From NCBI GenBank assembly GCA_965112735.1, contig OZ218950.1, forward strand, positions 3,038,001 through 3,102,000: 64,000 nt of DNA, in the 5' to 3' direction. Position 1 is the stretch's first letter. Each line of letters starts with the position of its first letter. This stretch comes from Phaeosaccion multiseriatum (Eukaryota; Protista; Ochrophyta, other classes). The notes beneath the pieces are model-generated. The model had not been told where the DNA came from. It did not search any database and saw nothing but the letters and a program-made list of their open reading frames with translations. The position numbers and the translations under genes are program-made. Of this stretch, positions 7,112-62,176 are shown in pieces.

Positions 7112-7212
7112 ATTCATGATTCACCAATAGAGGGTATTGAAGAATAGAAGAATGAAGAAAAAAAAATTAAGAAAGAGAAGAGTAAAGAGAGATGAGGGAG
7201 AATTCATTGAAG

Positions 7213-23238: not shown

Positions 23239-23689
23239 CCCAAGTCTCTCCCCACCATGCTTGTGCGGCACAGCATGCGAGGGATAGGCGGTGGCGGCAA
23301 GGCCAGCAGCGAGGTGCATGAGCTTACAGGAGAGGAATTCTAGCTACTTGGGGCCATCCAAAGAGCGGAGCCCAAAGGGGGGGGGAGGGGAGGAGCCCAC
23401 ACCTGTACATACACACGATCATAGCCTAGCGTAACTACTTAATCTACTGCTATCTACTGTCAGGTTCCCGCCCGGCCTTTCGGCATGGACCTTAGGAAAA
23501 AAACAAACAAACAAACAGCTAATTAATGTTTGTAAAGCTTTGGGTCCTTGCTCCTGACCTGGACTCCTTCTTTCATCACTGAGTGACACCGGCTTACTCT
23601 CTCCTGTGACTGCCGCTCCGCCTCGGTCCATATACGGTTACAGAATTCCTGGCGCGCCCAGATGGTCTACCTACCCGGTGTCAGGTGGT

Positions 23690-24656: not shown

Positions 24657-27600
24657 ACTGCTGCGGTACTACCACCCCCCCCAACTTCATCGATCCAGTC
24701 CAGCTCGGTACCATTCGGCTGCCTCAGCCGCCTCAGCCGCTGCTCTCGCCGCCTTTTCCACCGCCAAACAGCCCTGCGCAACACACCCTTTGCTCTGAAC
24801 ACTTGAATGGCTTGGGGCCGCCACGTGCTCCTGAGCTGTCCGAGGGCCTCAGCGCCGGACTCTTCGTTGGCGATGAGGATGGAGGCGAGCTTGAGCAAGG
24901 TAAGGCGGAAGGAGAAGTCGAAGCTCTCATCTGAGGCGATGGCCTCCTCGTATTCCTGTTGTTTGTGTGCGTGCAACTGTGTGTGTTATTGATTTGGAGG
25001 GCCTTTTTTTCTTTCAACGGCACGTCGGCGGGAGATGAAGCGACGAAGCTCACCCTGCCCTTCCGTAGGCCAGCTCACTTGTCCACCTACCCACACATCC
25101 ACCCACCCACCCACCCTCCCACTTCTCGCATCCACTCATCCTCTCATCCTCTCACCTTGCCAAGCAGGCCGTTACCATCGCATCCCAGCGGGGCCGGGAG
25201 GGCGAGCAGGAAGGGAAGGAGCTTATTGGGCTCCAAGAGGCCCAATCCCTCAGGGTCAAACACCGCCCATGTGACCTGCATGTCTCGGAGTGAGCCCTCC
25301 ACGCTTGCCCTCTCTGTACTGTTGATGATCTCGAACGTCTCTACGATGACCATGACAAAAAGGTTGGTGAGCACGAACTTCATGAGTATCACAAAGATTA
25401 GGAAGAAGGCGATGATGCCTGCCTTATGTAGGCCTGAAGGGGGAGGGGGGGGAGGGGGGAGGGAGGGAGGGAGGGAGGGAGGGAGAGCGACGGAGAGAGA
25501 GAGGAGAAGGAGCAGGAGGGAGATGAGGATTTGGGTCCGTGTACTAACGAAGGTACAGAATGACCCCTCCCCCCCGCCCCGACGAGACTCCCGCCTCATG
25601 TTCAGCCGTTAGTTTTTTCCTCACCAGAGTCTACGTTCTTCACCACACACACACACACACACACACACATACGCACATGCACACGCGCGCACACACATAC
25701 ACATACGCACACAAACGTACACACTCACGCATACAAAACAATCACACAGCACGCACACACACACACACACACCCAAATGTTGTCTAATTTTGTCTTGGCC
25801 TTCCACTAAGTTACCTGAGTCTCCATTCTCCACCACAACCTTGGCAGAGCTTGCCCAGCCTTCTCCTGTGGCCACGACAAAGAGCAGCTGCAGAGAGGCC
25901 CACAGGCTGTCGAAATTCTGAAACGTATCGAGGCCGTCGTCGGAGAAGTTGGTCCCATGGAACAGGGCCACGCCGGCATGTGCGAATATGAAGATGCCGA
26001 TGGACACCATGACTGGGAGGGGATGGGGGAGGCGAAGCACAGGACACGATACGAGAAGAGGGAGATGGTCAGCCGGGTGGGTGGGTGGAGTAAGTGGAGA
26101 AGAAAGGTCCTGCCTGGCTGACTGACACTCCTGGCTGACAGTCCTGGCTGACAGTCCTGGCTGACAGTCCTGGCTGACACTCGGCTGACGAGAGCCCCGA
26201 AAATGGCCGAGAGAGAGAGGTCACTCACCAAACACCAGTGACAGAGTGTGCAGCGGATACAGCGCCGCCACCATGATGGAGGAGAAGCGGGGAATGTGCG
26301 CGAGCAGCCTGGAGGAACAAGTGTGTGAGCAGCCCGCAGGGTTCGTTAGATACACACACACGCACACACACACACACGCGCGCGCGCACACGCGCACACA
26401 CGCACACGCAGTAAGATACTCGCTCCACAAGTCATCCATCCGACCTCACCCCACCCCTCCCGTAGTCGTGAGCCGCACGCCCGCCAGTTGCGGGCGGATA
26501 CACACACACACGACATGTATGAACACGTCACAAACATACACAACATGACTGAATGAATGTAGTTGGACAGCTACACACCTAAGAATGCGGAACACTCTCA
26601 AAGCCTTGAGGAGTCGGAGCAGGGTGGGTCCCTGTCCACCGCCCCCGTCCCCACCGCAGCCCCAATCCGACCGACTGTTGAGCACCACATCCACGAGGCC
26701 CGTGGCGGTGATGGCAAAGTCGAAGCGGTGCTGATTGGTACCGAAATACTTAAAGTGCCCCAGGCCGAGCAGCTTCACACAGCATTCCCCAGCGTACACG
26801 GCGAAGAATACGAGGTTGCTGAAGTAGATGGTCGAGGAGAGGGCTTCCGACGCGTCGTTCCGGTCCAGGGCGAGGGTGACGGTGTTGGCCAGGAGCACCG
26901 TTACCACGACACGGGTGAACCAGGGGCTCGTCACGACTCGGAGGCAGGGCTCACGCCAAGGGTAGCGATCCGCTGCGAGGGAGTCCCTGTGGCGGTGGTG
27001 GTGGTGGTGGTGGTGGCGGAGTAGTCAGTTAGTCAGTCGGTTATGGATGGCGTCGTTCAAGACACAAGGATGAGGGAAAGGGGGGGGGGAGGGGGGTTCA
27101 CCTGCATACATCTGCTTCTGAGAGACTGGAACTGGCCGCGAGATATACGCTCCCTTCCTCTCTCACTCTCTCACTCACTCACTCACTCACTCACTCACTC
27201 ACTCACGCACTCACTCACTCACTCACTCACTCACTCACTCACTCACTCACCCACTCACTCACTCACTCACTCACCCACTCACTCACTCACTCACTCACTC
27301 ACTCACTCACTCACTCACTCACTCACTCACTCACTCACTCACTCACTCACTCACTCACTCACTCACTCACTCACTCACTCACTCACTCACTCACTCCCTC
27401 CTTCCCTCCCTCCCTCCTTCCCTCCCTCCCTCCCTCACTCCCTTCTCACTTGATGATGGGGCGCACGGTAGACAGCCTAGCAATGTAGTCCTGCCACCGC
27501 CGCTCCTCCTGCGAAATGAGCTCCCCTTTAGCATTCATACTCTTAAAGGCCAAGAAGGCCTCAAACATAACCCCGATAAAGAGGTTTGTGCCATAAAAGC

Positions 27601-30600
27601 CAAACACGATTATGCCCACAAAGAAGTACCAAAAGGCGTTCTTCGAGGCGTTAGCATCGGGTTCGTAGTCCACTCCCTCGGTGCTCATGGCGTTGATGAG
27701 GACGTCGACCCATCCATCAAGGGTGCTGGCGATGAACATGCTTACCATCGAGGACCACGCGTTGTCAAAGTTGTACAGCTTGAGGATGGGAAGGGGGGAG
27801 GAAGGGAGGGAGGCAACGAGTGAGAGGATAAGAGGCAATGCATCAAGACCTTCTGTCCCCTCCCTTTTCACACGCCCGACCTGCACGCGCACACACACGC
27901 ACGCACTTACCGTGTTAGTCCATGTGCCTGTGTACGTGGTGACGCTCCCGTCCTCCGCCTCCCACTCGCCCGAGCACGGAGGGGAGGTGTCCGTGCCGTA
28001 GCGGTAGCTGCCCGGCAGGAAGTCATCATTGCCTTCGCAGTGATAGAATTTACCTTTGAACAGCTCCATGCCCACCTTCAGCGGATAGAGTGGATGGGTG
28101 ATTGGTTGGTACTCAGTAAGGCACTCGAGCGAAGGGTGTTGGACAGACCCTCCCTCCAAAGCAAGACAGGAGCAGGACAGAAGAAGCGCACCACACATAC
28201 ATGCATGGTGGTGTGGGATAGCCAATACGACCAAGAGCATGGTGGTGTGGGATAGCCAATACGACCAAGAGCATGGTGGTGTGGGATAGCCAATACGACC
28301 AAGAGCATGGTGGTGTGGGATAGCCAATACGACCAAGAGCATGGTGGTGTGGGATAGCCAATACGACCAAGAACATGGTGGTGTGGGATAGCCAATACGA
28401 CCAAGAGCATGGTGGTGTGGGATAGCCAATACGACCAAGAGCATGGTGGTGTGGGATAGCCAATACGACCAAGAGCATGGTGGTGTGGGATAGCCAATAC
28501 GACCAAGAACATGGTGGTGTGGGATAGCCAATACGACCAAGAGCATGGTGGTGTGGGATAGCTAAAACGACCAAGAGCATGGTGGTGTGGGATAGCCAAT
28601 ACGACCAAGAACATGGTGGTGTGGGATAGCCAATACAACCAAGAGCATGGTGGTGTGGGATAGCCAATACGACCAAGAGCATGGTGGTGTGGGATAGCTA
28701 AAACGACCAAGAGCATGGTGGTGTGGGATAGCTAAACACCGAAGAGCAATCCTCGTTTGCCGTCATATGTGCGGCGAGCTCTTCTCATAGGCGCCCATCA
28801 GAGACTGATTGAAGCAGAGAAAGGCAACCAACCGACCAACCCACCAGCCAGCCAACAGTAGATCACTTACGATGCTGTAGGCGAAGAAGATGGTTCCAAT
28901 GAGCATTGCCAGTGTAGCACAGCTCCGAATGCTGTCGTACAGAGCGAGGATGAGTAGCTGCAGACCCTCCACTCGATGGAGCAGTCGCAGCGGCTGCAGC
29001 GATCGCAACACCACGAGTGTCTGACCGTACCCGCGCCACCCCTCATCATCGTCACTATCGGCACCACCGTCACTCGAGAAGGCCTTGTGCTCTTGTATTC
29101 GGTAGAGGACCTGGAGGGCGCCGCATATGGCAATGAACATGTCCAGCATGTGCCACGGGTCTCGCAGGTAGGCTCCAGGGGCGGCCCACCACGAGAGAGC
29201 GGTCACACGCAACCACACCTCGGCTACAAACACGCCAGCCAAGGCGGAATCCAGCACGATGAGTGGCGAGGCGAAGGGGTCTGTGTCACTGCTACTGCTG
29301 GTGCTACTGCTGGTGCTGGTGCTGGTGCTGGTGCTGGTGCTGGTGCTGGTGCTGGTGTTGGTTGTATCGTACGATGCGCCAACTATGAGCGCCATGCAGA
29401 GGCACTGCACGATAATCACCGCCACCATCCCGTGCTCGAACCAGGCGCTGCGGAGGAGAGGCACAAAGCCGCAGGAGTGGCGCCAACACGACTGTCTGAG
29501 CCGCATCTCCCACTCCATCGCGGTGCACCGTTTGCCAAACACTCGGTCCAAGAACGCCCACCAGGGTGTGTGATTGGCGCTGTCCATGGCACTGAAGAGG
29601 GCGATGAGCTCTCCTGGCTGCCGCTCCTGGGCCTTACGTTGCCGCTGCTCGGCGTCCAGGGCTTTGGCTGAGGAGAGAGGTAGAGGGAAAGGGGAAAGGG
29701 GGAGGGGGGAGGGGGGAGGGGGGAGGAGGGAGGGGGAAGGGGGAAGGGGGAAGGGGGGAACGGGGAAAGGGAAAGGGAAAGGGGGAGGAGGAGGAGGAGG
29801 AGGAGGAGGAGGAGGAGGAGGAGGAGGAGGAGGAGGAGGAGGAGGAGGAGGAGGAGGAGGAGGAGGAGGAGGAGGAGGAAGGGGACGATATATCAGAGAG
29901 CCACACGCACACACACACACATACAGGCACACACACAAAGATGCACACGCGCACACATACCCGCATACACACACGCACAAACATGACATACATAACATAC
30001 CTGCGGCTACCCGATCACTTCTCTCCGACTGAAGCGCGCCCGAGCTCCTCCTCCTCTGCGCAGCCGCCCACCCCACCACCGCATCCTTTGCTCTCCCTGC
30101 CACCGCCCCTCCGAGGGAGGCTCTCCGTCCTTGGCCCGGGCTGACGCTGCGCCCCCCCCCCCCCTCCGCCGCCGCCGCTTCAAAGGCAAGAAGTGCCACC
30201 GAATCTCTCCTTGCGCCGCTGTTGGACATGCCAACCCCGGCGCCGACGCTGGCGATGCGCGACAAAGAGCCGGGGCTTCTACTCGGACTGCGACTGTGAT
30301 TGTCGCCGCCACATAGGCTGCCTCTGCTTTGGTCGCCTCTACTCAGGCCACTTAGGCTGCTTCTTCTTTGACTGAGCTGGCGTGGAGGTGGAGAAGCAGA
30401 GCGCCCTCCCGCCCCCCACCCACTTCCGGCACCTGCCGCTGGGGACGGAAAGGAGGAAGGTCTCAAGAGCTGCTGTGACGACGGTGACAAAAATGGCACA
30501 GCTGCAGCTACTGCTGCCTCGCCCCCGGGAGATGCGTAGAGGTCCAGCCTGGGGCTACTCCCTCGCCTCCTTCCTCGGCCGGTACTCGCGCCCGTTCCCT

Positions 30601-42200: not shown

Positions 42201-43398
42201 CACACATATGCACACGTATGCACACCACGTAACGTGCATGTACACACGCGCACACCAACACACAAGGCTCCCTTCCCTTCGTGCGTCTCACGCACCGATT
42301 CCATCCGCAACTTCCGAGAACAGCCCCTCGGTCTCTGCGTCAATGGGCAGTCTGGGCTTGACGAGTTCGTCGTTGCTGAGGCAGTTGTTGATGTGCTCCG
42401 TGAAGGCGGACCTCTCCTCGTCGCTGTAGCTGTGGTAGGCGCTACCCCCCCCCGCCCGCTTCTGCATGCCGCTTTTTAACAAGTTCGACTTGGACGCCGT
42501 TGTGGATAGATCTGGGGAGGGAGAGAGGGAGAGGGAGAAAGAGAGAGAGGGGGGGGGGGGGCAGGAAGCATCGGTCTTTGGTTAATGGGGTCAAGAGAAC
42601 CCCTCGATCGGTGTGGTCATTGTGTTAAGTCTCGCCCGGCTTCTTCATTCATTCACCTTTTACGGCCCCAGACGGTCTCCGGGCCGGCTCCGGCGTCTTA
42701 GGAAAAGGAGCAACATCAGGAACGACAACAACGTCTTCTCCGTCGTCTCCCCTCAGGCCAGTCACAACACGCACAAACTCCGGGAACTGGATGGAGCCGT
42801 CTCCGCTGGTGTCTGAGTCCTTCATAACCGCCTTCACTTCCTCCTCAGACGCCTGTGTGGCCGAGTGAGGGTCGTGCGTGTGGAAGGGCGTGTGTGGAAG
42901 GGTGTTATTGCTATGTAGAGAAGGGTATTGCGGGGACATTGGAGCCTAATGGGTTATTATAACCTAGGGGGTGTCTGCCTTTGCGGAGCGTCTGTCTTCT
43001 CGGCAGTATCGTCGCTGGCATCTGCTGCTGCTTCTGCTACTGCTGCTTGGTGAAGCGTGGACCCTTCGACAGCTGGCTGCTGGCTGACCGGCATGGGAAC
43101 AGCCCCCCCATTCCTCTGGCTCCCTTTTTCTCCACACACACTTGTTCTCAGATCTCGTCCCGCTTTCGGGAGAAGCAGCAAGCGGCCCACACGGCGTACA
43201 AGCAAGTGAAGAGCCTCAATCAAGCAAACTTACATTCTCCCCCAGCTCCGCGAGAGCCTTGGTGAGCTCTCCCATGTCGATGCTCCCGTCCGAGTTGGCG
43301 TCAAATTGGGCGAACGATCTCTTGATGTTCAGGGTTTGCTCCTGGGTCAGAGAAGCAGCAAGGTCCTCCGGTATCAAGTAGGAGGTGAAGGACGCCAT
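38018..43398 (-). CDS. Fimbrin/plastin (2 EF-hands + 4 calponin-homology domains)
   Basis: EF-hands FDANSDGSIDMGEL and SDTSGDGSIQFPEF. CH-domain motifs HSYSDEERSAFTEHIN, LCKLIN, ENMNLALNAARAIGC, LILGLIWQ, LLVRWFNHHL, TREEKVFRMWINSL, KKVENGNYVI, GNAKYAVSVARKIGA. Confidence 0.96.
39781..39907. repeat. (CCT)n(CTT)n compound microsatellite, intronic
   Basis: Directly visible next to a donor site of the fimbrin gene. Confidence 0.9.
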
Positions 43399-43805
43399 CG
43401 TCCCACCGCTGTGTGCCTCAACTGCCGCTGCTGCTGCTCTTTCAGCCTTCCGGAGCAATTTTGTCTGAAAGTGATGTGATGGAAAAGGAAAAAGCCGCTT
43501 GGCACACCCTCCTCTCTCTTCCTATGATCGTGCGAAGTCGTCCAACTGATTGTCAAGGTGATCTATTTATATGTGTGCTTGCTTGTAGCTATTTTTGTCT
43601 AACTCCTCTCGATTCAATGCAGCGATGATGCGGGCTCCGCAAGCAACTGGCACTCCAACTCGTCGGCCCCCTCGGGTTGGCGGCACTGAGCTTCCTTTCT
43701 CATTCCTCTCCCGCCACACAAGGGGCCTACCTCAAAATCTCGTGTCTATCTCTGGCTTCGAGTTGCCGGCAGCCCTTCTTTCCCCGAGAGGAAGAAGAGG
43801 AGAGA

Positions 43806-48908: not shown

Positions 48909-49129
48909 GCCTGAGGCGGCCTGGCTGCGGCCGAAAGCAAGAAGCCGTGCGGGGGGCGATCCGAAACCATTTCCGAAGAGGGGAAAAGGGAATTGAAAAA
49001 ATTAAATTAAAAATTAATTTTAAAAACATAATCATGAAGCCAGGCAGCACTCAGCGCACAGGGAAAGAAAGACCCGGAGGGGGGGGGGGGGGGAATTGGT
49101 GCGCAGGGAGGGCACTCATTATTGTTGGC

Positions 49130-49488
49130 ATGTCTAGCATGCCTGGGAGAGGTTCCCACGTTGGTGAGCGGGCGCGCTCTCGGTCCCGTGTATTGTTTAG
49201 CACGCTCGTGCTTTACCTCTTCGGATTGCCCTCGCCAGCAGCAGGAAGTCCTCCAGCTTCCTTCGGTTTCTCCCCATCCGCTCACCATGTAAGAAGGAGC
49301 GCCCCTCGTGTGACTTGGGTCTGAATTCTTCACTTTGCCCCCATGAAGAACTGGCTGCGTAAAACCCCTTCCTGCGCTCCTCCCCCTTCTTTGCTGCATC
49401 ACTGGTGTGCCTTCACTTGGTCCGTGGAACATGATCGCTCATGCAAAGTATTTGTACCCCCCTGATCTCCCAGACGCGCTGGAAAGGT

Positions 49489-49520
<32 letters not shown>

Positions 49521-52500
49521 ACAACAGGTCCCACCAGCAATTGATTCCGATGGGGCGAGGTTCAGTGCCCTCTCCTACCTCGTAGGAGGCCCCTCGAAGG
49601 TCTCCACCTTCTTCGAGAGCAAGTACGGGGCGCATTTCCTGCATCGCAGTGCCTTGGGCAGAGCTTCCGTGACTCAGGCATACTTGGACGCCAATAGCAC
49701 TTCGGCCGCTGCTGCTGCGGCTGATGGTGCTTGGAAGAGCAGCACCCACGCGTTGTACAATGGCGGTCTGGGCGTATCGGCCTCCGGATCCACGGTTCTG
49801 GTGAACACCTTCCCGCTTTCTGTTGCTGAGGTGAGGAAAGATGCCCAGCCACACACAAAAGAGCGGCACCAGCCAGGCCAATTCTTATCCCTTCTTCCCT
49901 CCCTGCCTGCTGCCCGTCCGCGCTGCTGCTTCCCACCCAGCGTGACCTGGAGCCCCTCATCCGCCAGAACGAGGTCCAGTTCAGGAGCTGGGGAAGCAGC
50001 ACGGCCATGCCCGCAGATATGACGTACGAGGCCTTTGTGAAGTTCGTCGAGGAGGACAGGAAAGGCTCCGCGGTCATCACGGTTCAGAACGAGGCGAGCA
50101 TGTCGAGTCAGCTTCAGAAGTTCCACCGCGAGCTCCAGGAGCAGCTCAGCCTTCCTGTGAGGTAAGCGCGCGCCCTCCTCTTTCTCTCACACACACTCAC
50201 TCTCTCTTTCTCTCTGTCTATCGGTCTCTGTCTCTCTTCCTCGGCCGTATCTCTTCCTCGACGTCATAGCGAGAACCCCCCCCCCGTAGCAAGTGTCGTG
50301 TCTTGACTTATTGCCTGACGAAGTGGGTCCTGTAGGGGGTGTATATCTGGCCTCCTGCCAGCCTACGTGTCTGCCTGCCTGCCTGCCTGCCTGCCGGCCG
50401 GCCGGCCGGCCTGCCTGTCTGTCTGCCCACTTGCTTGCGGCCTGTATGCCGGGCTGCCAGCCAGACTTCCGCCCCGGGAAACATGGCTTACGCATTGCAT
50501 GTCGTCTCGCTCACCCGCCTCTCCTCCCTTCCGCTTCTTCCTCCTGCTCTTTCTTCCTCCCTCCCCCCCCCCCCCTTCTCCCTGTCTCCCCCCCTGCGTA
50601 TGCCTGCCGGCCTGCCACTCTGTCCACCCATCTGCCCCTGCCTACGTCCCCGACATGATCGGCGCTCTCTGTCTGTCTACCGCACCCGACCCACCCCACC
50701 ACCAGCATGAACGTTTGTAAGTCCGCCACGGCGTTCTTGGAGTGTTTTCCTTTCACCTTTTTGTCTTTCCTCCCGAGCAGGACAGTGTGTAGTGCCATTG
50801 ACAGCAGGGTGTAAAGAGTGTAACTGAGTATCCGCCACAGAACGTTATCAGACGCAGAGGCGAGAGCCAATGGCCAACAAAGGAGACCTACAACGCCATG
50901 AGAGGAGAGAGAGAGGCAGCAGACTCGTGCATTCTCTGAACCCCTTTTTCTTTTTTTCTCCCTCGCGATTTGCCACACACAGATCACTCCGGCCCTGAAG
51001 CAGTGGCGCTCAAGCCGCACACAGACATGTACGATGTCTTCGTGGTGCAGCTGCAGGGCAAGAAAGAGTGGGAGCTCTGCATGCCCTTCGCTGATCTCCA
51101 GGAGGTGAGAGAGCGCGAAACAGGGGGGTGTGAATGGGGAGGTGGGGGGGGGGCGCGCGGGGGGGGGGGGGGGGGCAAGCAAGGCGCCAGGGAGCGAGAA
51201 CTGTCGAGATGAATATCGGTCTTTCTGACTCTATCTTGCCACAGCCAGTCATGTCTGACCTTCATCCTGCCTCGTCCTCGTCCTCTATACCCTTCGCACC
51301 TCTGTCTGTCAACCCAATGCTTTGACCACTTGCAAAGTGGCAATCCTCCCTGTCGTTTGCTCGCTAAATGTCCCTCTTGCTCTCCCCCCTCCCCGCCACA
51401 CCACCCACCCTTCGTCTCGTGTCGTGGCGCCTCTCGCAGGAGCGCAGCAAGTACCCTTCCCACCCCTTTACAGCGGCAGACTTCTCCGATATGGTGAGGA
51501 AGGAAAGTTGCACACATAACAACCAACTCCCTCCCTTCATCACCCATAGGCTAGACTCTGATCTTTTTGCTGTGCCTGCTCTTGCTTTTGCTGCTGTCCA
51601 GAGTGGTTGAGGTTTAGTCGTCGATGCTAATCATCTCTCTCTCTCCTTGTCCTCTGTCTCTCCCCTTTCGTGACTCAGATGGAGGCAAAGATGGGGTCCA
51701 TCGAGGGCTGCACGACGCACCTCATTCGAGACTCGATGCGCTGCTCGAATGTCAGCATGACTGTCGGGGACTCGCTTTACCTCCCCAAGGGCATCGTACA
51801 CTCGGCCACGGTAAGCCCACTTCCGTCGTTCCGTCGTTCCATCGTTCCTTTCTTTCTTCTCTCCCTTCGCTCGCTTCTTCTCCCTTCCTCTGCCTCTTCC
51901 TTCCTTCCTTCCTTCCTTCCCTTTCTCTCGTCCTTTTCTTCCCCTCTTCCGCCCTTGCTTCCCTCCTTCCCTTTCTCCTTCCCTCCCTCCTAGTCCACCC
52001 TCCGGCCGCCCTCACTCCTGCCCTCCCACCCACTCTCCATCCCTTCCTTGCGTCCTTCCCTTCCTTCCCTTTCTTCCTTCTCTTGCCTCTCTCCCTTCCC
52101 TGTCTACCTCTCATCAATGTACCCTCCCTTCCGCCGTCCCTTCCTTCCTGCTCGCCTTCCCTCCTTCCTTCCATCCCTCCTTTCCTTTACTTCCTTCGAT
52201 CCATCAACTGTTCCCATTCCTCCGTGTGTCCTTTGTGCGTTCCCTCCCTAACCCCTTCCTCCCTCCCCTATCTGCGTGCCCACTGCGCATACCTGTTGCC
52301 GGCCCTCTTCGCCACTGCTGAAGACGTCTCGAGGGTACAATGTCTCTACCCACGTGACCCTCGCCCTCCACCGTGACAACCTCGCCTTTGGTGACCTCCT
52401 CCGTGCTTCCCTCTTGGTACGTGAGACTTGCCCCCCCCCCCCCCCCGACTCGCTTGTGGTGGCTGCTCGGCTCCAACCCGTTGAGGAGGCGATGTGGCAG

Positions 52501-55500
52501 AGTGCACTATGTTGGTCTGGCTGTCGTTGACGTTTCCTTTGTCAGACTGTTCTTGTTTGAAAAGGGGGCACAGTCCCATATCATCTAGCGTGTCTGCCTG
52601 CAAGATCTCCCCCTTAATAACCCCTGTATAAACCCCCCCACCCCCCGCCCCCCCTCTCTCTCGCAGTCGTACAGCCAGGAGGTCTCTGTCGAGCCCCGGC
52701 TCTACGCTGCCGCCTTCCGCGCCATCGACAAGATTGTGCACTCGCCGGTTGAGGGTCTGGGCTGGCGGCGCGTTCTTCCCACTTCCATCCTGCCTTGTGC
52801 CACGACAGCTGCTGCCTCGCAGATGGCACCTGACGCTGACGAATCGTGTTCTTCCTTCGCCATCACGTACTTGACCGACGCCCTCTCCAAGATGGTTTCC
52901 GAGCTGACCCCACGCGCATGCGAGGCAGTCAACAACGTGGAGGACCAACTGGCCAACGAGCAGTACGGTCTTGAGAAGACATTGCCCTATCTTGCCGAGG
53001 CGACAAACGACTCCGAAAAGGCCCTCGACACCTTCCTGCAAGCCTTCTTGTCCGCTATGACCGACGAGCGAGGCCGGCGTCTACAAGGAGCCGTCACTCT
53101 GCTGCTGACAGACGCGTGAGTGAAGTGAAGGAGGTCCAGTTGTACATTTGTCCATACGGCATACTTGAGGTGCAATCCATGCCACATCCCCCTCCCACCC
53201 CACCTCACACACGCACGCACGCACCTCGTTGTTTAATCCTCTCTCCTTCTCCCTGTCCGTCTCAACCTGCCTGAGTATAGCGAGTGGGCGATACGAGCTG
53301 ACCGACTGGGAGGGCTCAAGAGAGAAGTAGAGGACAACGGAGACGCCATCGAACACCACCAGCGAGAGATCATCGATTCGATTCGGCCTCCGTATTGTCC
53401 TCTGGAAGACGTTTTCCAAGACTCGAAATTCGACGCGAACATACACCAAAACGGCCCGCGACGGAAGCTCGGTCCTGACGCCAGCAGCGGAAGCAAGTCC
53501 GCCGCGAAGCGACTACAAAGAGACTTCGATGACATGACGCGCAAGATATTGGAGGAAGTGGAGAACCCACGCATAAGCGGCATCGAGTACCCCGTCATGA
53601 AATCGTGAGTGGGGGCTGAGTTTGGCTGGGCGGGGATGGGTCGGGGGGAAGAAGGCATGCGGCGAGCCATGTATGTCTGCCCACCACTCGCACCTCCCTC
53701 CCCCCCTTCTCTCTCACTCTCCACCATGCATCTCTGTTCTTGATCTTTGAACTGGCTGTGTGCGTGGCCGCATGTTTCCAGGATGGTCCAGCGTTCCCGA
53801 CGACGTCTCAGCCTCCCAGAGGAGGAGAGGGCAACGGCGAAGACGTACAACGAGCATGGAGAGGACGACGATGACCCCATGCACCACCCGCACCGAAAGT
53901 TGGAAGAGATTTCCTCGGAATGCTCCGACGTATGCGACGTCGTCGCAGATATATGCGAAGTTGGATGTGAAACGTTACGCTTGGCAGCAGAAGTAGCAGA
54001 AGGCGTCTGCAACGTCGCTGCCGATCTTTGCGCAGCACCCTGCAAGATTGGGGGAAAACGCTGTTCCTGTGATGGCTCTTGTACCCGTGAGTGATTTCGT
54101 CCACTGAACTGGGGCCCCCTCTGCGGCAAGCATCCTTCTCTTCTCCTCACAAAGCTTCCCGCCCATTCTCCTATCTCACAGGAGACTGTGACGGGAGAAA
54201 GATTCTGAGCTGCGATGCGGGCGGGCGCTGCTTCCGAGGTTGTAACGGGGGCTGCCTTACGGGTGAGTTGGGCGCAACAACTTTGGTCTTCGTCTTCTTG
54301 CCCTTCATAGACTAACGAACACGCTGCTTCCCTCCCGTCTGCTCTGCAGGCTGCAACTTTTTAGGGAAGAACTGTGACTCGGGATGCACGCGCAGCTGTG
54401 ACCGCAGTTGTGTCCGCACGCAATCTTGCGACCAGGGTATTACAAGCTGCGACGGACAACCGTAAGTTAATAGCACACACATGTACACGCGGCGCGAACT
54501 CCAACTTTGCTGTGAACCCGAGCCCTTTTGGTTGCAACACGCCCACATTTTCTCCTCAGGTGTTCTAGCTAAGCAGCTCTCTCCACCCCAACCATGCTAA
54601 CCTATCCCCTCCCAACCCGTCCTATTCCAGTTGCTTTACACAGTGCAACTCCTATTGTGGTGGCCAGCAAAACTGCATCAATTATTGCGAACGGGCGCGG
54701 GGAGACTGTACAAGTGCAACGGTCACTCCACTCTTAGATCTCGAACAAGAATGCGGAGATTTCTGCGAGCAAAGCAAGGGAGTGTGTAACGTAAGTTAAA
54801 AGGCGGGGCCAATGGAGGCGCGTGCGTGGGGCTCGAGGCGAGGCGAGGCGAGGCGAGCCTAGCCCCCTCCCACTAACTCTCTATCTGCTGTGTATGAGAT
54901 CCTCCTCCCACTAACGAGTTGTTGTTTGTTTGTCTGAGCTTACTAGCTGCAGCCAGTGTGTCTGAGCCTCCTCCCCTTTTCTCTCTGTATGTCTCGCCTC
55001 TTTTTTTGCATCTCTCTGCGTGGTGGTCCCGCACAGAGCGTCTGCAAGACTATTCAGGGAGTCATCAGTTATTTCAAGGATGATGGGGTCAACGAGAACA
55101 TGACGAGCGCACCACCACAGATCAAAAACGGATTTAAAGACCTTCTGGGGCATGTGGTGGACTGGATGCAGGTACGTAAGTAGCTATGAATTGAGGGCGG
55201 GTGATCCTTGCTTGGAAGTTGGAAGATACGCCCCCCCACCCCCCACTAACGTGCCCTCCCCCTCTCGGCTTTCAGTCGGAGATTCAACTTTTCGGTGAAT
55301 GCCAGGCGGACACATTTCTCTTCATGTACAAGGGAATAGTGCCCACGTTTGCCTGGCTGGCGGACAACCGTCCATGGAACAAGGTCATGGAGGATCCGCG
55401 TCCGCTGGACGGGTTAGAGCCTCGCGACTGCGGCAACTTCTACGCGGTAGCAATGCTCGTAACTCTCTTTTTGAGTCCCTGGAACGCCGTGGGTCAGGGG

Positions 55501-56311
55501 CTGGGCCCCTTGTCTATGCTTGGCCCCGGTACGTCTCAGGGTAGGCTTTTCCTCTTCCTTTATTATATACCGCTACTAGCTAAGGAAGGGGTCAAGGGGA
55601 AGAACGTCGCCCTTCTCTTCTTTATTGTTATGTGCTTGCCATTTCATCTTGCCATATCATTGTCCTGCCCCTTGCCTGCACTGCCTGCCTAGGCTTCTTG
55701 CTCGGCATGGGGGGCGTTGAGTTCACCATTGGTTTGGGATCGGCGGCGACCAAGGCGTTTCACACCGTCCTGCTCGCGACGCCTGGTTTCAGGGACTACT
55801 TTGGCTTTGGCGGCGAAAGTACCGTCGAGGCCGTCGAGAGTATTGGTGCCTTCGCGGCAAACGATATCGATTTCACCATCGGCTTTTGGTTGGACAGCGG
55901 CACTTCCCTTCTCGATGTTTTCAGAGACCCCTTGAGTCTCTTTGAAGACCCCTTGAGTCTCCTCCGAGGGGATAAACAGAAGTTGGTTGCGACCTTTTCC
56001 ACGTGTATGTCGAGAGCCATTGGAGCCGACGGGGTAGGCCCGTCGAGTGGTGCGGCTGTCTCCATGGCAATTCTTGGATCAGACAAACTGGCTGGGTGGA
56101 GCACCGTGGTCGGAGCGGGGATTAACTTTAACTTGCTGACTGGAGGAAGAGTACCCTTTGAAGTTGGATTGGCGTTCGAGTTCGTGGGCGGGATAGACGC
56201 TGGTCCTTTACAGCTCTTTACAATCTCAGCTGAGGTGAGTTGGATATAGCTATCGTCCCGCCGCGCTGGGGTAGGTAAGGCCGACCCCAAAAGTTCTCAT
56301 CCCCTCACCCT

Positions 56312-56345
<34 letters not shown>

Positions 56346-59300
56346 GGCCCTTTCTCTCTTCCGGTTGGGGGTCTGGAACGCACAGCTGGAGGCCGACTTG
56401 GGCACTTCGCCCCTCACCTTTGAGACGTCCCTGTGCCATACGTGGGCAACAGATATCGGCGATCTGGCGAGCGAAGTGAGTGATGACATCAACGCCAAGA
56501 TACAAGACCTCCTAAGCTTCATCCAAGGAGAGGGGGTTGTTATCGAAGGCAACGGGCTGACGGACGCCCAGCAAGCCAACCAGGACCAGTCGCGAGAGGA
56601 ATTCGGGGGACTGCTCAACACACTTGGCGTCTCCTTGCTGGTGAGTTGTGAGTGGTGAGGGACATGGTTGGTACTACCTGCCTGCCTGCCTGCCTGCCCT
56701 TATACCTGCCTACCTGCCCTTATGCCTGGCCGTGTCTGCGGTTAGCTTGGCCATGCGCTATTCTCCGTACACACCGTATTGTGCACTCGCTCACTCTCGG
56801 ATTGTTTCCCCTGTCTGCCATCCGCCCCTACCCCCTTCCACCCTCCGCCTTCCGCCCAAGCAGGGATGCAAAACGGAAGGGCAGGAGTGTAGTGGCGGCC
56901 TTGAGTCGGGAGAAGACCTTGCCGCTTTCTTTGAAGAAGAGTACTCTGGAGCTAACCTGGAAACTCAGACGGGGCCGGTTTGGGGTCTCGAGGCTCAAGC
57001 GCAATGGTGCTGCGGCGACATGACCTGTGGGTTTGTCCCAGGTGCCGACCCAGGATCCCAACGACGTACGTGCCAGAAATGTGGCATTCAATTTCACGGT
57101 TGCAACCCCGATGCAGACCGCCCGTGTTGCTCCGACACCAACATTTGCGTGCCTCGAGCGGTATTGGAGATCCAGGGGGAGGCTCAGCCCACGCCCCTGC
57201 ATGACGCTGACTTCTATTGCATCGTAAGTATCAAGCAAGTTGTTGCTTGACCGGTGGACTGACTTGGCTACTCTGTGGGGGGATCGAAAACTTTGGTGGA
57301 TATCTTCTAGGGGCTGAAAGTACGACTTTCCGACGCTGTCTTGGGCGGCAGTGACGGCGGGTGCACAAGCCAACTCTGACGTCCGTCACTCCCTTCCTTT
57401 GTTGCTCTTTATCTTCCCCGCCCTCCCCTCCGTGCATGGCCTTCTTTTCGAAGCCGTGCGTCAGATCACTCCCGAGGATCAGTTCCAGTGGCCGCTCTTC
57501 CTCTTCTAGTCCTAGTACTATTCAGTACGCGGACACCTTTTTCTCCTTCTCCGAGTATTTTGGGGAGGGGTTGCACTATGACTCTACCTTCCACAACTAT
57601 GAAAACGAGGAGCAATACCCCTACCCTCTCATCGACTTCAACGAATGCAGGGAATACGAAGACCCCAGGGACGGATTCGGACAACAGAATACCTGCTGCG
57701 ACCGCGCTTCGAGCTGCGACACGGACTGCGACCAGATGGACCCCAGCAACGGCTACAATTCGAGGCGGCTTACGGGGGTGGAGGAAGTGGAGGAAGTCGA
57801 GGGTGCCTCTGTTAGTCCCTCTTCCCAAGGCCCTGACAGTCAACCACCAGAGTCTGGGCAGGCAACAACACCACAGCGCCAGGAGAGCCTGGAGCAGCAG
57901 GAGCAGCGGCAGGAGGCGCTGCAAAGTCAAAGAAGAAAAAGAAGAGCTTTGTTGCTGCAGAGTCAAAGAAGAAGAACTTCCTTGGACTTACTCAACGAGG
58001 AAGTGTTCGAGAATAAGTGGGAAAATGGTGAGACTCACCAGATGAGGGAGGTTGCGAGAGAGGAGAGTGGGGAACAAGGGGTGCATGTTTGCTTTCACTT
58101 TTGCTTCGCTATACTCCTTCCGCTGTCTTCTCTGGCAATTGAAACAAGCCTCATTCTCCCTCCTCGTCCTGAAATGTGCTGCCGTCCCTAGCCACCGATT
58201 CAGTTCCTGCCTCCGACAAGGAGGCTGACGAAAACTTGATCCAGCTCATCAAGACCGAGTTCGAGAGCAGAGAGTGAGTTGAGTGGGGGGGGGGGGGGGG
58301 GAGGGTAATGGTTGGACTGCTCGTCGAAGTCAGCGGCCGGCCGTGATTCACTCACTTGGCGAAGCAAGAAGCTTTGGTTGACTCTCCTTCATCTCCTCTG
58401 CGGAGCATCCTGCTGTACGCACTCCTGACTCATCTTGCCTCTGTGCGACAGGCCCGATGACATTCCACCCGAGGAGAGACCGGCCGAAATCCCACTAACG
58501 TTTGAGGCTGCCCTGGAAGACTACGGAGGCCTTGCTCCTCTTGTCGGCCTCGACGAGCCCGGACGTCCCACTAATATAACCTTCAGCGTAAGTTGCTTCT
58601 GCTGGCTGCTTCGGCTGCGCGGACACACACACAGAAAGAGAGAGGACAACACGAAGCTTTTTGCCTAGCTACTTTTGTTCTCTTCTCTCTTGCCTCTCTT
58701 GCCTCTTCTCTTCTCCCTCCCCTGCCCTGATCCCCCGCCCGTGCCGCACCCCCCGCCCCACACCTCCCTCCCGCACTCGCAGGTGCCCGTTGTCACGTTC
58801 GAGGACGCGCCATACTCGGCCCAATACGGTGATTCCGTAACGTTCGACGCGAGCGGCACCTACGATCCGGACGGGAGGGAGATGGTCCTGGGCTGGCTTG
58901 TCGCAGATCGAAATCTCGGCTGCGAAGGCCTCGTGTGCACCTTCCTGGCCTTTGAGGTAGGGGTGCTCGAGGTCAGCCTTGAGGCTTGCAACACGGCCAA
59001 GCTCTGCAGTCAAGCCGAGACTATGCTGACCGTTGAATCGCCGCCCCCACCGCCGGCTGGACAGGTGAGGTACAGGGCAGCTAGAGGGGTATGGGTGAGG
59101 TCGGTCGGGCGATGCGGTGAGAGAGAGCAGCAGAGCGGTGGTAGAGAGGAGGAGGGTGCGACATGCATGGGCGGAAAGAGAGGAGGGGAGAGAGAGGCAT
59201 GGGGTGAGAGAGGAAGAGGGCGAGGGGGAGAGAGGGAGAGACAGGAGCGAGTGGGTAGAGCAGAGAGAGGGGGGGTAGAGGGAACACCGAGAAGAAGTCA

Positions 59301-61376
59301 TGATGCAGAGGGGGAGGGAGAGTGGGAAACACATGGATGCATAGCTGTATAGCGTATTCCCAGCCTGTGTCCCCCCCCCTCCCCCACTCCGCCACATATA
59401 ATTTTGTGCGTGTGTGCTTCGCTTGCTTGCCTCACCCCATGATGTGATCTGATCGGTTGTCATCAGGGGGAGCCGCAAGCTCTGGTGCTGGACGCAGGAG
59501 AGCCTTACACCATCGCCAAGCCTATGGGCGTAAATTCAGTAACATTCCAAGCCCAGGCGAGCGGGGGTGCCCAGCCTGCGCTGTACCGCTGGCTTGTGGA
59601 CGGCGTCCAGCTGGAAGGGGAAGGATGCAACACCTCCCAGTGCACGTACACCCCCTTAGACACTGCCCCGGTGGGGGAAGCGCTGCGGGTGGAGGCCATC
59701 GTCTGTACCACTGAGGCAGTGTGCACCTCCGACCTTTCCTCAGTGACCATCCTCACAGACAACGACGACATCAACAATCCAGGCGGCAGTGGTGATCCCA
59801 TGATCTTCGGTCTTCAGCAGCAAGTATTTCTCTTTGAGGGGCGTGACGAGCGCTGGTACAATGGAATTACGAGTCCCAGGGTTGACCTGAACTGGAAGCT
59901 GAATGCCTTCCTGGAGTGTGAGAACGGCCTCAACCCGGTGAGTGAGTTGCGCTGCCTGCTTGTCCTCGGACTACAGAGTCTCTTTCTGCTTCCTACACTG
60001 ATTTTGCTGTTTTTGTTTCCTCCTCCTCCTCCTCCTCCTCCTCCTCCTCCCCCACCCACCTGCCTGCCTCAGACGTACTTCACTGCCAACGCCATGTCGC
60101 TCAAGAACAAAGACGGTTCCGTGGCGGACCGCGTCCTTATCGAGGTGATGGACAGGGACGTCTTCTTCCCCGGCTGCCCGCTCGACGAAGAGGTGGAGTC
60201 CTGTCTGGCCGAGGGCAACCTGCGCGTTGTGCTCAACGAGGAGATCATCACCAAGCCTGGCGCCTATGCCCTCAGCGGAGGGGGACTAATGTATGTATTC
60301 AACGCGTACGGCCCGTGCACCTACAAGCGAGACGTGCATATGGAGAACGACCTGCTCACCGAGAAGAAGCGTTTGACTGAGGCGAAGCTCCTAGAGCGGC
60401 GCCGCCGGCTGGTGAGTGAGTGAGTGAGTGAGTGAGTGAGTGGGTGAGTGGGTGAGTCGAAATCAAGTGACGCAGGCAAGCACGCACGACGGAGCCGCTC
60501 TCGCTCAAAGCCGCACAAGGAGGGAAGCCTTTCTTGCTCGTCTTTGTACACACAGCGAACACCCCTGACGGAAGTTGATACCTTCGTGTATATGTGTAAG
60601 TAACTGGTGCTTAACTTTGTCCCTTTTGCTCGCCCGCCGTAGACGGATCTTGATCCCTCAGGCCATGATGCGCTGGCCCTCGTTCACTCTCGCCTGTCCA
60701 AGTTCGAGGACGGGGCGGCCTGCCTGCCTTGGTACGACGAAAAGATGAAGACCGGCGAGCTGTACCAAAAGAACGGCGGCTGGGCCTCCGTCTACATCGA
60801 GACGGTGGACTCCTTCGACTTCCACATTGAGTGTGAGTAACCTGCTTCAATTGGCTTGCATTAATTTTGATTCCAGAGGGCGTGGCTGTTGCGTTTCCCA
60901 TCCCACGTGAGGCTTCTTGATTTCTTGCCGGTGTTTGTCCCGATACACACCTGACATACCTTGTCCTCCGGCCGACCTCGGAGGCCCGCGACTTGCGAAT
61001 TGAAGCTCTAATTGCCTGCCCCTGCCTTGCTTGGCTTCGACTTCGGATGTTATCGACCTGACCAACTCATACGTTCCTCCGACGCCGACCGTTACACGAC
61101 CGTTACCCCCCCCCACACGCGCACACGATAGATCGCCAAGAGGTGGAACGTTGCCACTCGCATTCCATAGACACTTTCATTGTCGGCTACCCCACCGACA
61201 CCGACACCGACCTGACCGAGTGGCAGGGCGTGCTGGGCGAGACGAGGCAACTCAAGTACAACACCTTCACGGGACAGCCCATCCTGCGCGGCCGCGAGCA
61301 GGTTCTCAGTGGGTCCGACGCCTCCTACGAGGTTGAGGGCCCGTGGAGTTTCGACTTTAAGGCCCGCAAGCAGTGA
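49130..61376 (+). CDS. Giant (~2100 aa, ~27 exons) secreted multidomain protein: signal peptide, cupin_4/JmjC oxygenase, Cys-rich region, knottin-like, PKD-like, GDP-type VWD/root-cap-like C-terminus
   Basis: All exons can be joined in phase with GT-AG junctions and no internal stop. Hydrophobic VLFSTLVLYLFGLPSPAAG leader. JmjC motifs TFFESKYGAHFLH, SMNVYHSGP, PHTDMYDVFVVQLQGKKEWELC, VGDSLYLPKGIVHSAT, STHVTLAL. PKD-like VTFDASGTYDPDG. Tail motifs GSGDPMIFGLQQQVFLFEG and GVLGET...SYEV. Confidence 0.8.
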
Positions 61377-62176
61377 GTCGATGCACAAGGAAAAGAAGAG
61401 ATTGCATTACTTTTATTACGTAAGAACAATGTGGTAGTTTTGATTTTTATATATATAAAATGGTGTTTGTTTAGGGTGGCAAACCAGGCCTAATCATGCC
61501 ACTTCCTGCATGTACCAAGAAACAGCTGTGACTTACCACCTCTGCCTTCTGCCTATCCTGATACTCCTCAGCGCAGCGGCTACCTCCCACACTCCTCCAG
61601 ACGGACAGTGCTTGCGCTGCACATGATCACACTGCAAGAGGAGTGAGAAGGGTCCATCGTCTCCAGCCGAACGGTTAAGAGAGAATAGGCTCGATCGTAA
61701 CCGTACTCCGACTTGTTCGTTTCTCTCATTGCGTGCGCCGTCTCCCTCTCTCTCCCTCTCTCTGGGCATACATGTCAGAGCAGTCGAGTGTTGACGCGTC
61801 GGCCCGATGACTTGGGTCCTGAGAGCGGAGGGGGGGGGGGGGCGGACGCTCCACACTCTGTGTTCCGCTCACTCTCCAGGGGCGAGGGGAGGGGCATCCA
61901 TCGTCCGTAGTTGTGCTATGTGGGGCTTTGCGGGCACGCCACACAGCTCTGCATCGCTTCACCGTAAACACCACGGTTCTCCTGCTGCGGGGCGGGTCGT
62001 CGAGAGATAACAGGGCCTGCCAAACGCCACACTTTCACCCGCTTTCGATGTGTCGAACACCAACAAACAGTGCTGCCTCTCCTCCTCTGCTAAGTCCAGC
62101 CGCCACTGGGTGTGCCCCTTTTCGAAGGAAGCCCTTCGAGAATAAGGGCCGGTGCTTCAGTGCCCCCCCCCCCCGC

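Follow-up and report, generated by a model that had tools for sequence, protein, structure and literature searches.

The 64,000-nucleotide (nt) stretch analyzed here (contig OZ218950.1 of the stramenopile alga Phaeosaccion multiseriatum; hereafter the window, in whose positions all coordinates are given) is intron-rich eukaryotic nuclear DNA with a G+C content of ~58%. On its + strand, over a gene span of ~12.2 kb (49130-61376), lies a spliced frame that carries a JmjC oxygenase domain with its catalytic residues, followed by a long Cys-rich region. On balance, we read this frame as one secretory precursor of ~2,100 amino acids (aa), in which a leader and an intact JmjC hydroxylase would be joined to a Cys-rich tail of extracellular type.

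The spliced frame and its JmjC domain

The gene model was curated by hand from the sequence, rebuilt independently of an earlier sequence-only reading of the same DNA, and then checked by script. It runs on the + strand from ATG 49130 to TGA 61374-61376 and comprises 27 exons (6,321 nt, 2,106 aa) without an internal stop, while all 26 introns (87-544 nt) are of the GT-AG type and in phase. This model bears out the continuous in-phase frame that the sequence-only reading had described. Leave-one-out codon log-odds, for which 502 stop-free intron windows served as control, are above zero in all exons except E1 and the short E8. The boundaries of exons X7, X11, and X12 are uncertain, and every alternative found for them leaves the frame open. 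The enzyme part of the frame holds the following features.

49474-49830, 49941-50161, 50706-50716, and 50983-51104, + strand: exons E2, E3, micro-exon E4, and E5 of the JmjC domain (double-stranded beta-helix), from Pfam and PDB matches
51440-51493, 51679-51810, and 52324-52416, + strand: JmjC exons E6, E7, and E8, with a Pfam match on E7
51018-51026, + strand: iron ligands HxD, His262-Thr263-Asp264 (CAC-ACA-GAC), aligned to PHYD of MINA53
51799-51801, + strand: distal iron ligand His349 (GIVHSAT), within the stretch matched by JmjC_2 profile positions 79-113

Judged from its sequence matches, the JmjC domain (aa ~70-383) is a real and intact member of the MINA53/NO66/YcfD (JmjC_2) clade. Using Pfam on stop-free pieces of the + strand (single open reading frames [ORFs] or exons), we found that the E5 ORF matches JmjC_2 (PF08007; formerly cupin_4) at 35.3 bits (E 9.7e-9, cut-off 22), and that E7 gives a second match, alone below the cut-off (17.6 bits, E 0.0028), which covers profile positions 79-113 and includes the distal His. 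A phmmer search of the PDB with E5 returned MINA53, NO66, YcfD, and a cupin 4 family protein; the segment ALKPHTDMYDVFVVQLQGKKEWEL was aligned to the PDB match, and the alignment to MINA53 extends from ALKPHTD onward. PDB sequence searches with E2, E7, and X1, all of them short, returned no meaningful match. The Lys predicted to bind 2-oxoglutarate (2OG), Lys277 (51063-51065), is the second Lys of GKKEW and aligns to the Lys of MINA53 GEKHW. The JmjC_2 score and the PDB matches thus confirm the intact cupin_4/JmjC domain of the sequence-only reading, whose coordinates for the triad (H-T-D plus the distal His) are exact and whose placement of the 2OG-binding Lys in GKKEW agrees with the alignment.

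Two further details of this region are in line with the clade. The 11-nt micro-exon, which has consensus AG and GTAAGT flanks and is needed for the frame, yields SMNVY, a presumed motif of MINA53-type enzymes, and restores a conserved strand. In addition, E8 contains THVT, an instance of the HxT motif listed as a feature of the MINA/NO66 clade (PMC2938197). Coding scores of the JmjC exons range from 0.19 to 0.46 bits/codon, short E8 excepted, and five of their seven polymorphisms are synonymous, the other two being non-synonymous. One JmjC intron contains a G-rich tract (51100-51299, with a G-run at ~51130-51175) that reaches contig depths of 25,000-30,000 in two public runs, and therefore matches a class of sequence that is highly repeated or of low complexity in this genome.

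The Cys-rich tail and its junction with the enzyme

Downstream of the JmjC exons, the frame continues through a helical region, a linker, and the tail.

52667-53115, + strand: exon E9, aa 384-533, helical extension, taken as the dimerisation region (coding score 0.27 bits/codon)
53281-53604, + strand: exon X1, aa 533-641, helical linker rich in [RK][RK]L (0.42 bits/codon)
53605-53781, + strand: spacer (GTGAGT...TTTCCAG, GC 0.61), an intron if there is one gene or a 174-nt intergenic gap if there are two
53782-54086, 54182-54262, 54350-54461, and 54631-54790, + strand: exons X2 to X5, Cys-rich stalk, with consensus introns of 87-169 nt
55037-55171, 55276-55528, 55693-56234, and 56386-56640, + strand: orphan middle exons X6, X7, X8 (Gly-rich, strand-like), and X9
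56864-57223, 57526-58027, 58204-58273, and 58452-58587, + strand: orphan middle exons X10 (12 Cys), X11, X12, and X13
58783-59064, + strand: exon X14, PKD-like, aa 1612-1705, motif FDASGTYDPDG, from Pfam and PDB
59467-59937 and 60073-60411, + strand: C-terminal exons X15 (an Ig/PKD-like part, then GDPMIFG...) and X16 (coding scores 0.35-0.59 bits/codon)
60643-60832 and 61171-61376, + strand: C-terminal exons X17 and X18, the latter with the stop TGA 61374 (coding scores 0.35-0.59 bits/codon)

The tail spans ~1,460 residues and holds most of the Cys of the protein, 66 of 73 being located after residue 641. Its stalk (residues 686-862) has 31 Cys in 177 aa, mostly as CxxxC (15 vs. 5.1 expected), and Cys-Asp or Cys-Asn dipeptides are enriched (19 vs. 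7.5 expected, P ~0.0005). Both the Cys richness and the dipeptide count support the disulfide-rich type of tail, with many C-D and C-N pairs, that the sequence-only reading had claimed. Polymorphisms in the tail are mostly non-synonymous and change many residues, none of them a Cys; among them is a linked double change in the stalk, TAT>TGG (Tyr>Trp) at 54684-54685.

The modules beyond the stalk are largely without recognizable relatives. Relatives were sought with the single exons E9, X15-X16, X8, and X1 as queries. The orphan middle exons (55037-58587) are open frames with coding scores of 0.21-0.64 bits/codon; they gave no Pfam match, and X8 gave no usable ESM Atlas match and no metagenome relative. 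Of the PKD-like modules proposed by the sequence-only reading, one finds weak support: X14 matches the PKD domains of ColH collagenase in the PDB phmmer search (E 0.006, with FDASGTYDPDG aligned) and Pfam PKD_4 below threshold (E 0.046, 14.2 bits, cut-off 27). The VWD/root-cap-like modules of the same reading found no backing, since neither a VWD nor a Root_cap profile matched at E<=1 on 59443-60420, 60643-60837, or 61062-61373, and X15-X16 returned no homologue and no usable ESM Atlas match; the presumed resemblance of the short motifs GDPMIFG and GVLGETR to VWD/root-cap sequences was not confirmed. No membrane span is predicted in the whole protein (19-residue hydropathy maximum 1.46, threshold 1.6), a span between enzyme and tail having been considered as well, and the scanned pieces gave no kinase or SH2 Pfam match.

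Some local features of the tail were recorded on the way. A hydrophobic stretch (FYAVAMLVTLFLSPW...) at 55420-55530 (aa ~960-990, in X7, after the in-frame Met 55387) is the only other signal-peptide-like match on the + strand, and may be an internal hydrophobic strand or reflect a mis-set exon boundary. The X8-X9 intron contains a (GT)n run (56316-56345), and a (GTGA/GTGG)n run (60412-60457) starts exactly at the donor of the X16-X17 intron, offering possible donors every 4 nt. At the 3′ end, the final stop overlaps GTGAGT (61374-61379), and an in-phase acceptor at ~61570 would add ~18 residues before the next stop, so that there may be a 3′-terminal intron or an alternative C terminus.

We consider it likely that the enzyme and the tail belong to one gene rather than two, and infer a single transcript. 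The frame meets two apparent stops, both within GTGAGT donors that are two of the strongest in the gene, on a scale where 1% of decoy GT sites reach 8 bits and none reaches 10 bits. The first, TGA 53117, is enclosed by the donor at the end of E9 (9.8 bits) and was rejected as a real stop: the first 84 codons of X1 score as coding as does the exon as a whole (0.42 bits/codon, reached by 0 of the 502 stop-free intron windows) and contain no ATG. X1 must therefore be spliced to the upstream exon E9, and TGA 53117 is not a stop. The second, TGA 53606, is enclosed by the donor at the end of X1 (10.6 bits) and is followed, after the 177-nt spacer, by two in-phase acceptors at 53782 (about 0-1 bits) and 53812 (7.7 bits).

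Several observations weigh against this continuity. Both junction donors enclose an in-frame TGA, so that an unspliced reading would end at 53117 or 53606, and the final stop at 61374 also overlaps GTGAGT, which means that such a coincidence of stop and donor does occur. The acceptors at 53281 (-2.0 bits) and 53782 score poorly. At the end of X1 the protein is about complete in length for a MINA/NO66-type protein (PMC6182338). No winged-helix domain was detected in E9 or X1 by Pfam, the X1 model, or PDB, a weak negative because the models were built from a single sequence. Four public runs of one sample contain the locus, with contigs that span introns and exons alike; they represent DNA and therefore carry no splice information, their only joints falling at low-complexity repeats. 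Finally, the single-exon searches found no relative of the parts beyond the JmjC core, and none confirms the fusion.

Part of this evidence fits a tandem arrangement, to which we give a minor share of the probability, in which a JmjC gene of ~641 aa (E1-E9 plus X1) ends at TGA 53606, a Cys-rich gene starts at ATG 53783 (MVQRSRRRL...), and the single frame is stitched together through chance splice-like sites. The in-frame TGA stands directly at the end of X1, and the ATG, in an AGGATGG context 1 nt past the low-scoring 53782 acceptor, has a purine at -3 and G at +4, is the first of its open frame, and could start a second gene; no transcript or relative shows the fusion. However, 174 nt would then have to hold a 3′ untranslated region (UTR), a terminator, a promoter, and a 5′ UTR, whereas the nearest same-strand neighbor, upstream, is 2.3 kb off. 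The spacer is intron-like in its length, G+C, and pyrimidine content, and lacks an AT-rich patch of the type found at gene ends here: only five such patches (at least 75% A+T over 40 nt) occur in the 64 kb, and two of them flank the whole unit. The supposed stop at 53606 lies inside a 10.6-bit donor, and the stronger of the two acceptors that follow reaches 7.7 bits. Moreover, the second protein would have 66 Cys and a PKD-like domain yet no signal peptide. Even a loose scan of the + strand from 49130 to 55387, the in-frame Met inside X7, found no signal-peptide-like start exon other than E1, so that the Cys-rich, PKD-bearing tail has no other leader; a hidden signal-peptide exon for the tail was also searched for in 53116-53781, and none was found. 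If the tandem arrangement were true, the locus would hold a divergent, possibly endoplasmic reticulum (ER)-targeted JmjC hydroxylase beside an orphan Cys-rich gene, and its interest would be modest. The proposal of a leader, a JmjC domain, and a Cys-rich tail in one frame is thus supported by the gene structure.

The two helical exons deserve separate mention. The AlphaFold2 (AF2) model of E9 is all-helical at low confidence (predicted local distance difference test [pLDDT] 42), E9 has no Pfam match, and an exhaustive HMMER search of 1.8 billion representatives gave 0 matches, itself included. The X1 model (pLDDT 70.8) consists of two long helices without strands; X1 has no PDB fold match and no Pfam match, and as a query against metagenome loci it found no relatives. 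The strain variants seen in the public-run contigs include a 6-nt in-frame insertion at 52841 in E9 and a 1-nt deletion at 53643 inside the spacer; indels in the predicted introns measure 1, 2, 4, 5, 8, and 10 nt, plus one of 3 nt.

The leader exon and the surroundings of the gene

Whether the protein enters the secretory pathway depends on the first exon, which lies downstream of an AT-rich patch.

48975-49047, no strand: AT-rich patch (at least 75% A+T over 40 nt), possible promoter/TATA region, ~100 nt upstream of the start codon
49130-49288, + strand: exon E1, signal-peptide-like leader, aa 1-53, an ORF with a GTAAGA donor in phase with acceptor 49474

The E1 leader has a basic n-region, a 13-residue hydrophobic core (VLFSTLVLYLFGL), and a small-residue site, AAG/S. 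The acceptor of exon 2 at 49474, which is preceded by a good pyrimidine tract, scores 8.6 bits and lies in phase with E1. The 128 kb of both strands of the window contain 13-37 signal-peptide-like start exons with a donor, so that ~0.01-0.03 would be expected in phase within 500 nt upstream, a somewhat generous figure because the thresholds were set after E1 was seen. The sole single-nucleotide polymorphism (SNP) of E1, at 49192, is synonymous. A role of E1 as signal peptide is thus plausible on its sequence, and codon usage gives it no support. The signal-peptide-like leader of the sequence-only reading is weakly confirmed: E1 looks like one, and such start exons are rare in the window, yet E1 resembles an intron in codon usage and has the weakest donor of the gene.

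These last two points, together with an in-frame ATG at 49441 that could start a protein without the leader, speak against E1. With a coding score of -0.31 bits/codon, E1 is matched by 30% of the stop-free intron windows, and its GTAAGA donor (5.9 bits) is the weakest of all donors; ATG 49441, upstream of a poly-Gln run, is in frame and contiguous with E2. If translation began there, the product would be an ordinary intracellular (nucleolar or cytosolic) enzyme resembling ribosomal oxygenases, with or without the tail, which we regard as improbable. The 8.6-bit acceptor 49474 lies within that very ORF, in phase with E1, and implies an upstream coding exon, because once it is used the next in-frame Met falls well within the JmjC fold. 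The context of ATG 49441 is poor (C at -3, C at +4), E1-like exons are rare by chance, and the one SNP of E1 is synonymous. Furthermore, E9 has no relative among the 1.8 billion representative proteins, which means that this is no conserved orthologue of NO66/MINA53; an attached tail, with 66 Cys and a PKD-like domain, would speak for an oxidising location outside the cytoplasm. Plastid targeting by E1 was rejected, the predicted cleavage at AAG/S lacking a Phe at +1 (a weak argument and our own reading).

Around the leader, an upstream in-frame ATG (49035) lies inside the AT-rich patch, and a (CAG)9 microsatellite (49483-49529) just past the 49474 acceptor encodes the poly-Gln run, whose length may vary among strains because the run contigs break there.

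The gene is flanked upstream by a DEAD-box helicase gene (+ strand, 43.7-46.8 kb) and downstream by a convergent dehydrogenase-like gene (minus strand, ~62.2-63 kb).

61391-61483, no strand: AT-rich 3′ flank, right after the stop and before the convergent minus-strand gene

Together with patches at 7126-7195 and 23491-23541, this flank lies between convergent gene ends, and the three may mark shared terminator or poly-A regions. Elsewhere in the window, at 43219-43800, two genes start head to head, separated by only a few hundred bases: the DEAD-box helicase gene (plus strand) and an EF-hand/calponin-homology gene of fimbrin-like type (minus strand). The interval between them is likely a bidirectional promoter.

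Relation to described enzymes and a possible mode of action

The sequence-only reading held that no architecture of this kind had been described. This does not stand, as Iyer et al. (Iyer, Abhiman, de Souza, and Aravind, 2010) reported an expansion in Monosiga of extracellular JmjC proteins of the MINA/NO66 clade fused to Cys-rich GCC2/3 repeats, Ig, disintegrin, or Sushi domains, along with further expansions, of extracellular JmjC proteins of the FIH1 type, in both Monosiga and stramenopiles; cell-surface proteins were their predicted substrates (PMC2938197). Compared by description, the predicted alga protein would resemble those of Monosiga brevicollis in combining, in one polypeptide, an extracytoplasmic MINA/NO66-clade JmjC domain with Cys-rich repeats and an Ig-type beta-sandwich, and of the clade markers given there it shows the HxT motif and a putative C-terminal helical extension. 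The Monosiga fusions also carry intracellular SH2 or kinase domains (PMC2938197), whereas the alga protein shows no membrane span and no kinase or SH2 match. It is set apart further by its partners (a CxxxC stalk, a PKD-like domain, and orphan modules instead of GCC2/3, disintegrin, and Sushi domains), by a dibasic-Leu-rich linker, and by its host, a stramenopile alga rather than a choanoflagellate. The gene is thus a variant of the described extracellular JmjC fusions, with a stramenopile host and different partner modules. To our knowledge, extracellular members of the MINA/NO66 clade have yet to be studied experimentally, the Monosiga ones being sequence predictions of 2010.

Within the canonical family, a JmjC domain is followed by a dimerisation domain and a winged helix, and the enzymes hydroxylate His or Arg of ribosomal proteins (PMC6182338). 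The alga protein shares with MINA53 (RIOX2), NO66 (RIOX1), and YcfD the HxD...H triad, the 2OG Lys, and, by prediction, a helical region after the JmjC domain; these three are intracellular proteins of 370-640 aa with a winged-helix end, whereas its model has a signal-peptide-like leader, a tail of ~1,460 aa, and no winged helix detectable in the searches above. A JmjC domain with an N-terminal signal peptide, predicted in the alga protein, is known from animal JMJD8, which is ER-lumenal and for which the same paper does not establish enzymatic activity (PMC5684140). JMJD8, unlike the alga protein, is small and JmjC-only, belongs to another JmjC clade, and has no fused cargo.

Lumenal Fe/2OG hydroxylation of secreted proteins, as predicted here, is also the business of AspH, the collagen prolyl and lysyl hydroxylases, and leprecan, and the functional analogy to such secretory-pathway 2OG oxygenases was drawn by Iyer et al. 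(PMC2938197). These enzymes are unrelated subfamilies of the fold, and the AspH consensus for epidermal growth factor (EGF) repeats, C-x-[DN]-x4-[FY]-x-C-x-C, occurs 0 times in the 2,106-aa model. We know of no secretory 2OG oxygenase among them that is made as one chain with its own substrate.

Another point of comparison is the linker. In the 2,106-aa model, [RK][RK]L motifs number 8 vs. 1.3 expected (P<0.0005), five of the eight falling at aa 520-679, around the enzyme-tail junction; the junction RRRL (647-650) would be lost if the higher-scoring in-phase acceptor 53812 is used. This enrichment recalls the RXL motif of another stramenopile group, the diatoms, whose silica-associated precursors (silaffins, cingulins, frustulins, and silacidins) are cut at RXL, e.g., RRIL and RRNL, and whose walls contain 3,4-dihydroxyproline and trimethyl-hydroxylysine (PMC4557024). 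In contrast with these precursors, to which it has no sequence similarity, the alga protein lacks Lys/Ser-rich repeats of the silaffin type, and there is no evidence that the alga makes silica. We know of no identified enzyme that makes the hydroxylated amino acids of stramenopile walls.

Of the readings considered, we lean toward the likeliest, in which the protein is a MINA/NO66-type hydroxylase that is secreted and either tethered to a Cys-rich matrix protein or produced along with it. Its secretion, activity, substrate, and cleavage are what we infer in the following scheme. The leader would take the whole chain into the ER, where the JmjC domain would be supplied with iron, oxygen, and 2OG, like other lumenal 2OG oxygenases. 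Its targets would be side chains in secreted or wall proteins, most likely His or Arg by analogy with the clade. For the tail, two roles are conceivable, an anchor that holds the enzyme in the extracellular matrix or one of its substrates, and later cleavage at the dibasic-Leu sites may separate the two.

A more specific version is doubtful: within the ER, the JmjC domain would hydroxylate its own Cys-rich tail, either in cis or between the partners of a dimer, before a protease of the RXL type cuts the linker. The sequence-only reading had proposed such self-hydroxylation at Cys-Asp and Cys-Asn pairs, followed by a cut at basic sites; neither proposal is supported here, and Asp/Asn hydroxylation does not fit the known His/Arg chemistry of the MINA53/NO66/YcfD clade. 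If this version were true, the cut would release a hydroxylated wall or adhesive protein, no self-contained "modify-then-release" matrix precursor would have preceded this one, and the gene would give a lead to the hydroxylases behind the hydroxylated residues in stramenopile cell coverings.

Should the reading as a secreted, tail-bearing hydroxylase hold, the gene would represent a soluble, probably secreted stramenopile version of the extracellular JmjC fusions, which would show that recruitment of the MINA/NO66 clade to the cell surface happened on more than one occasion. With an enzyme and its candidate substrate or anchor encoded in one gene, it would be a compact test case as well.

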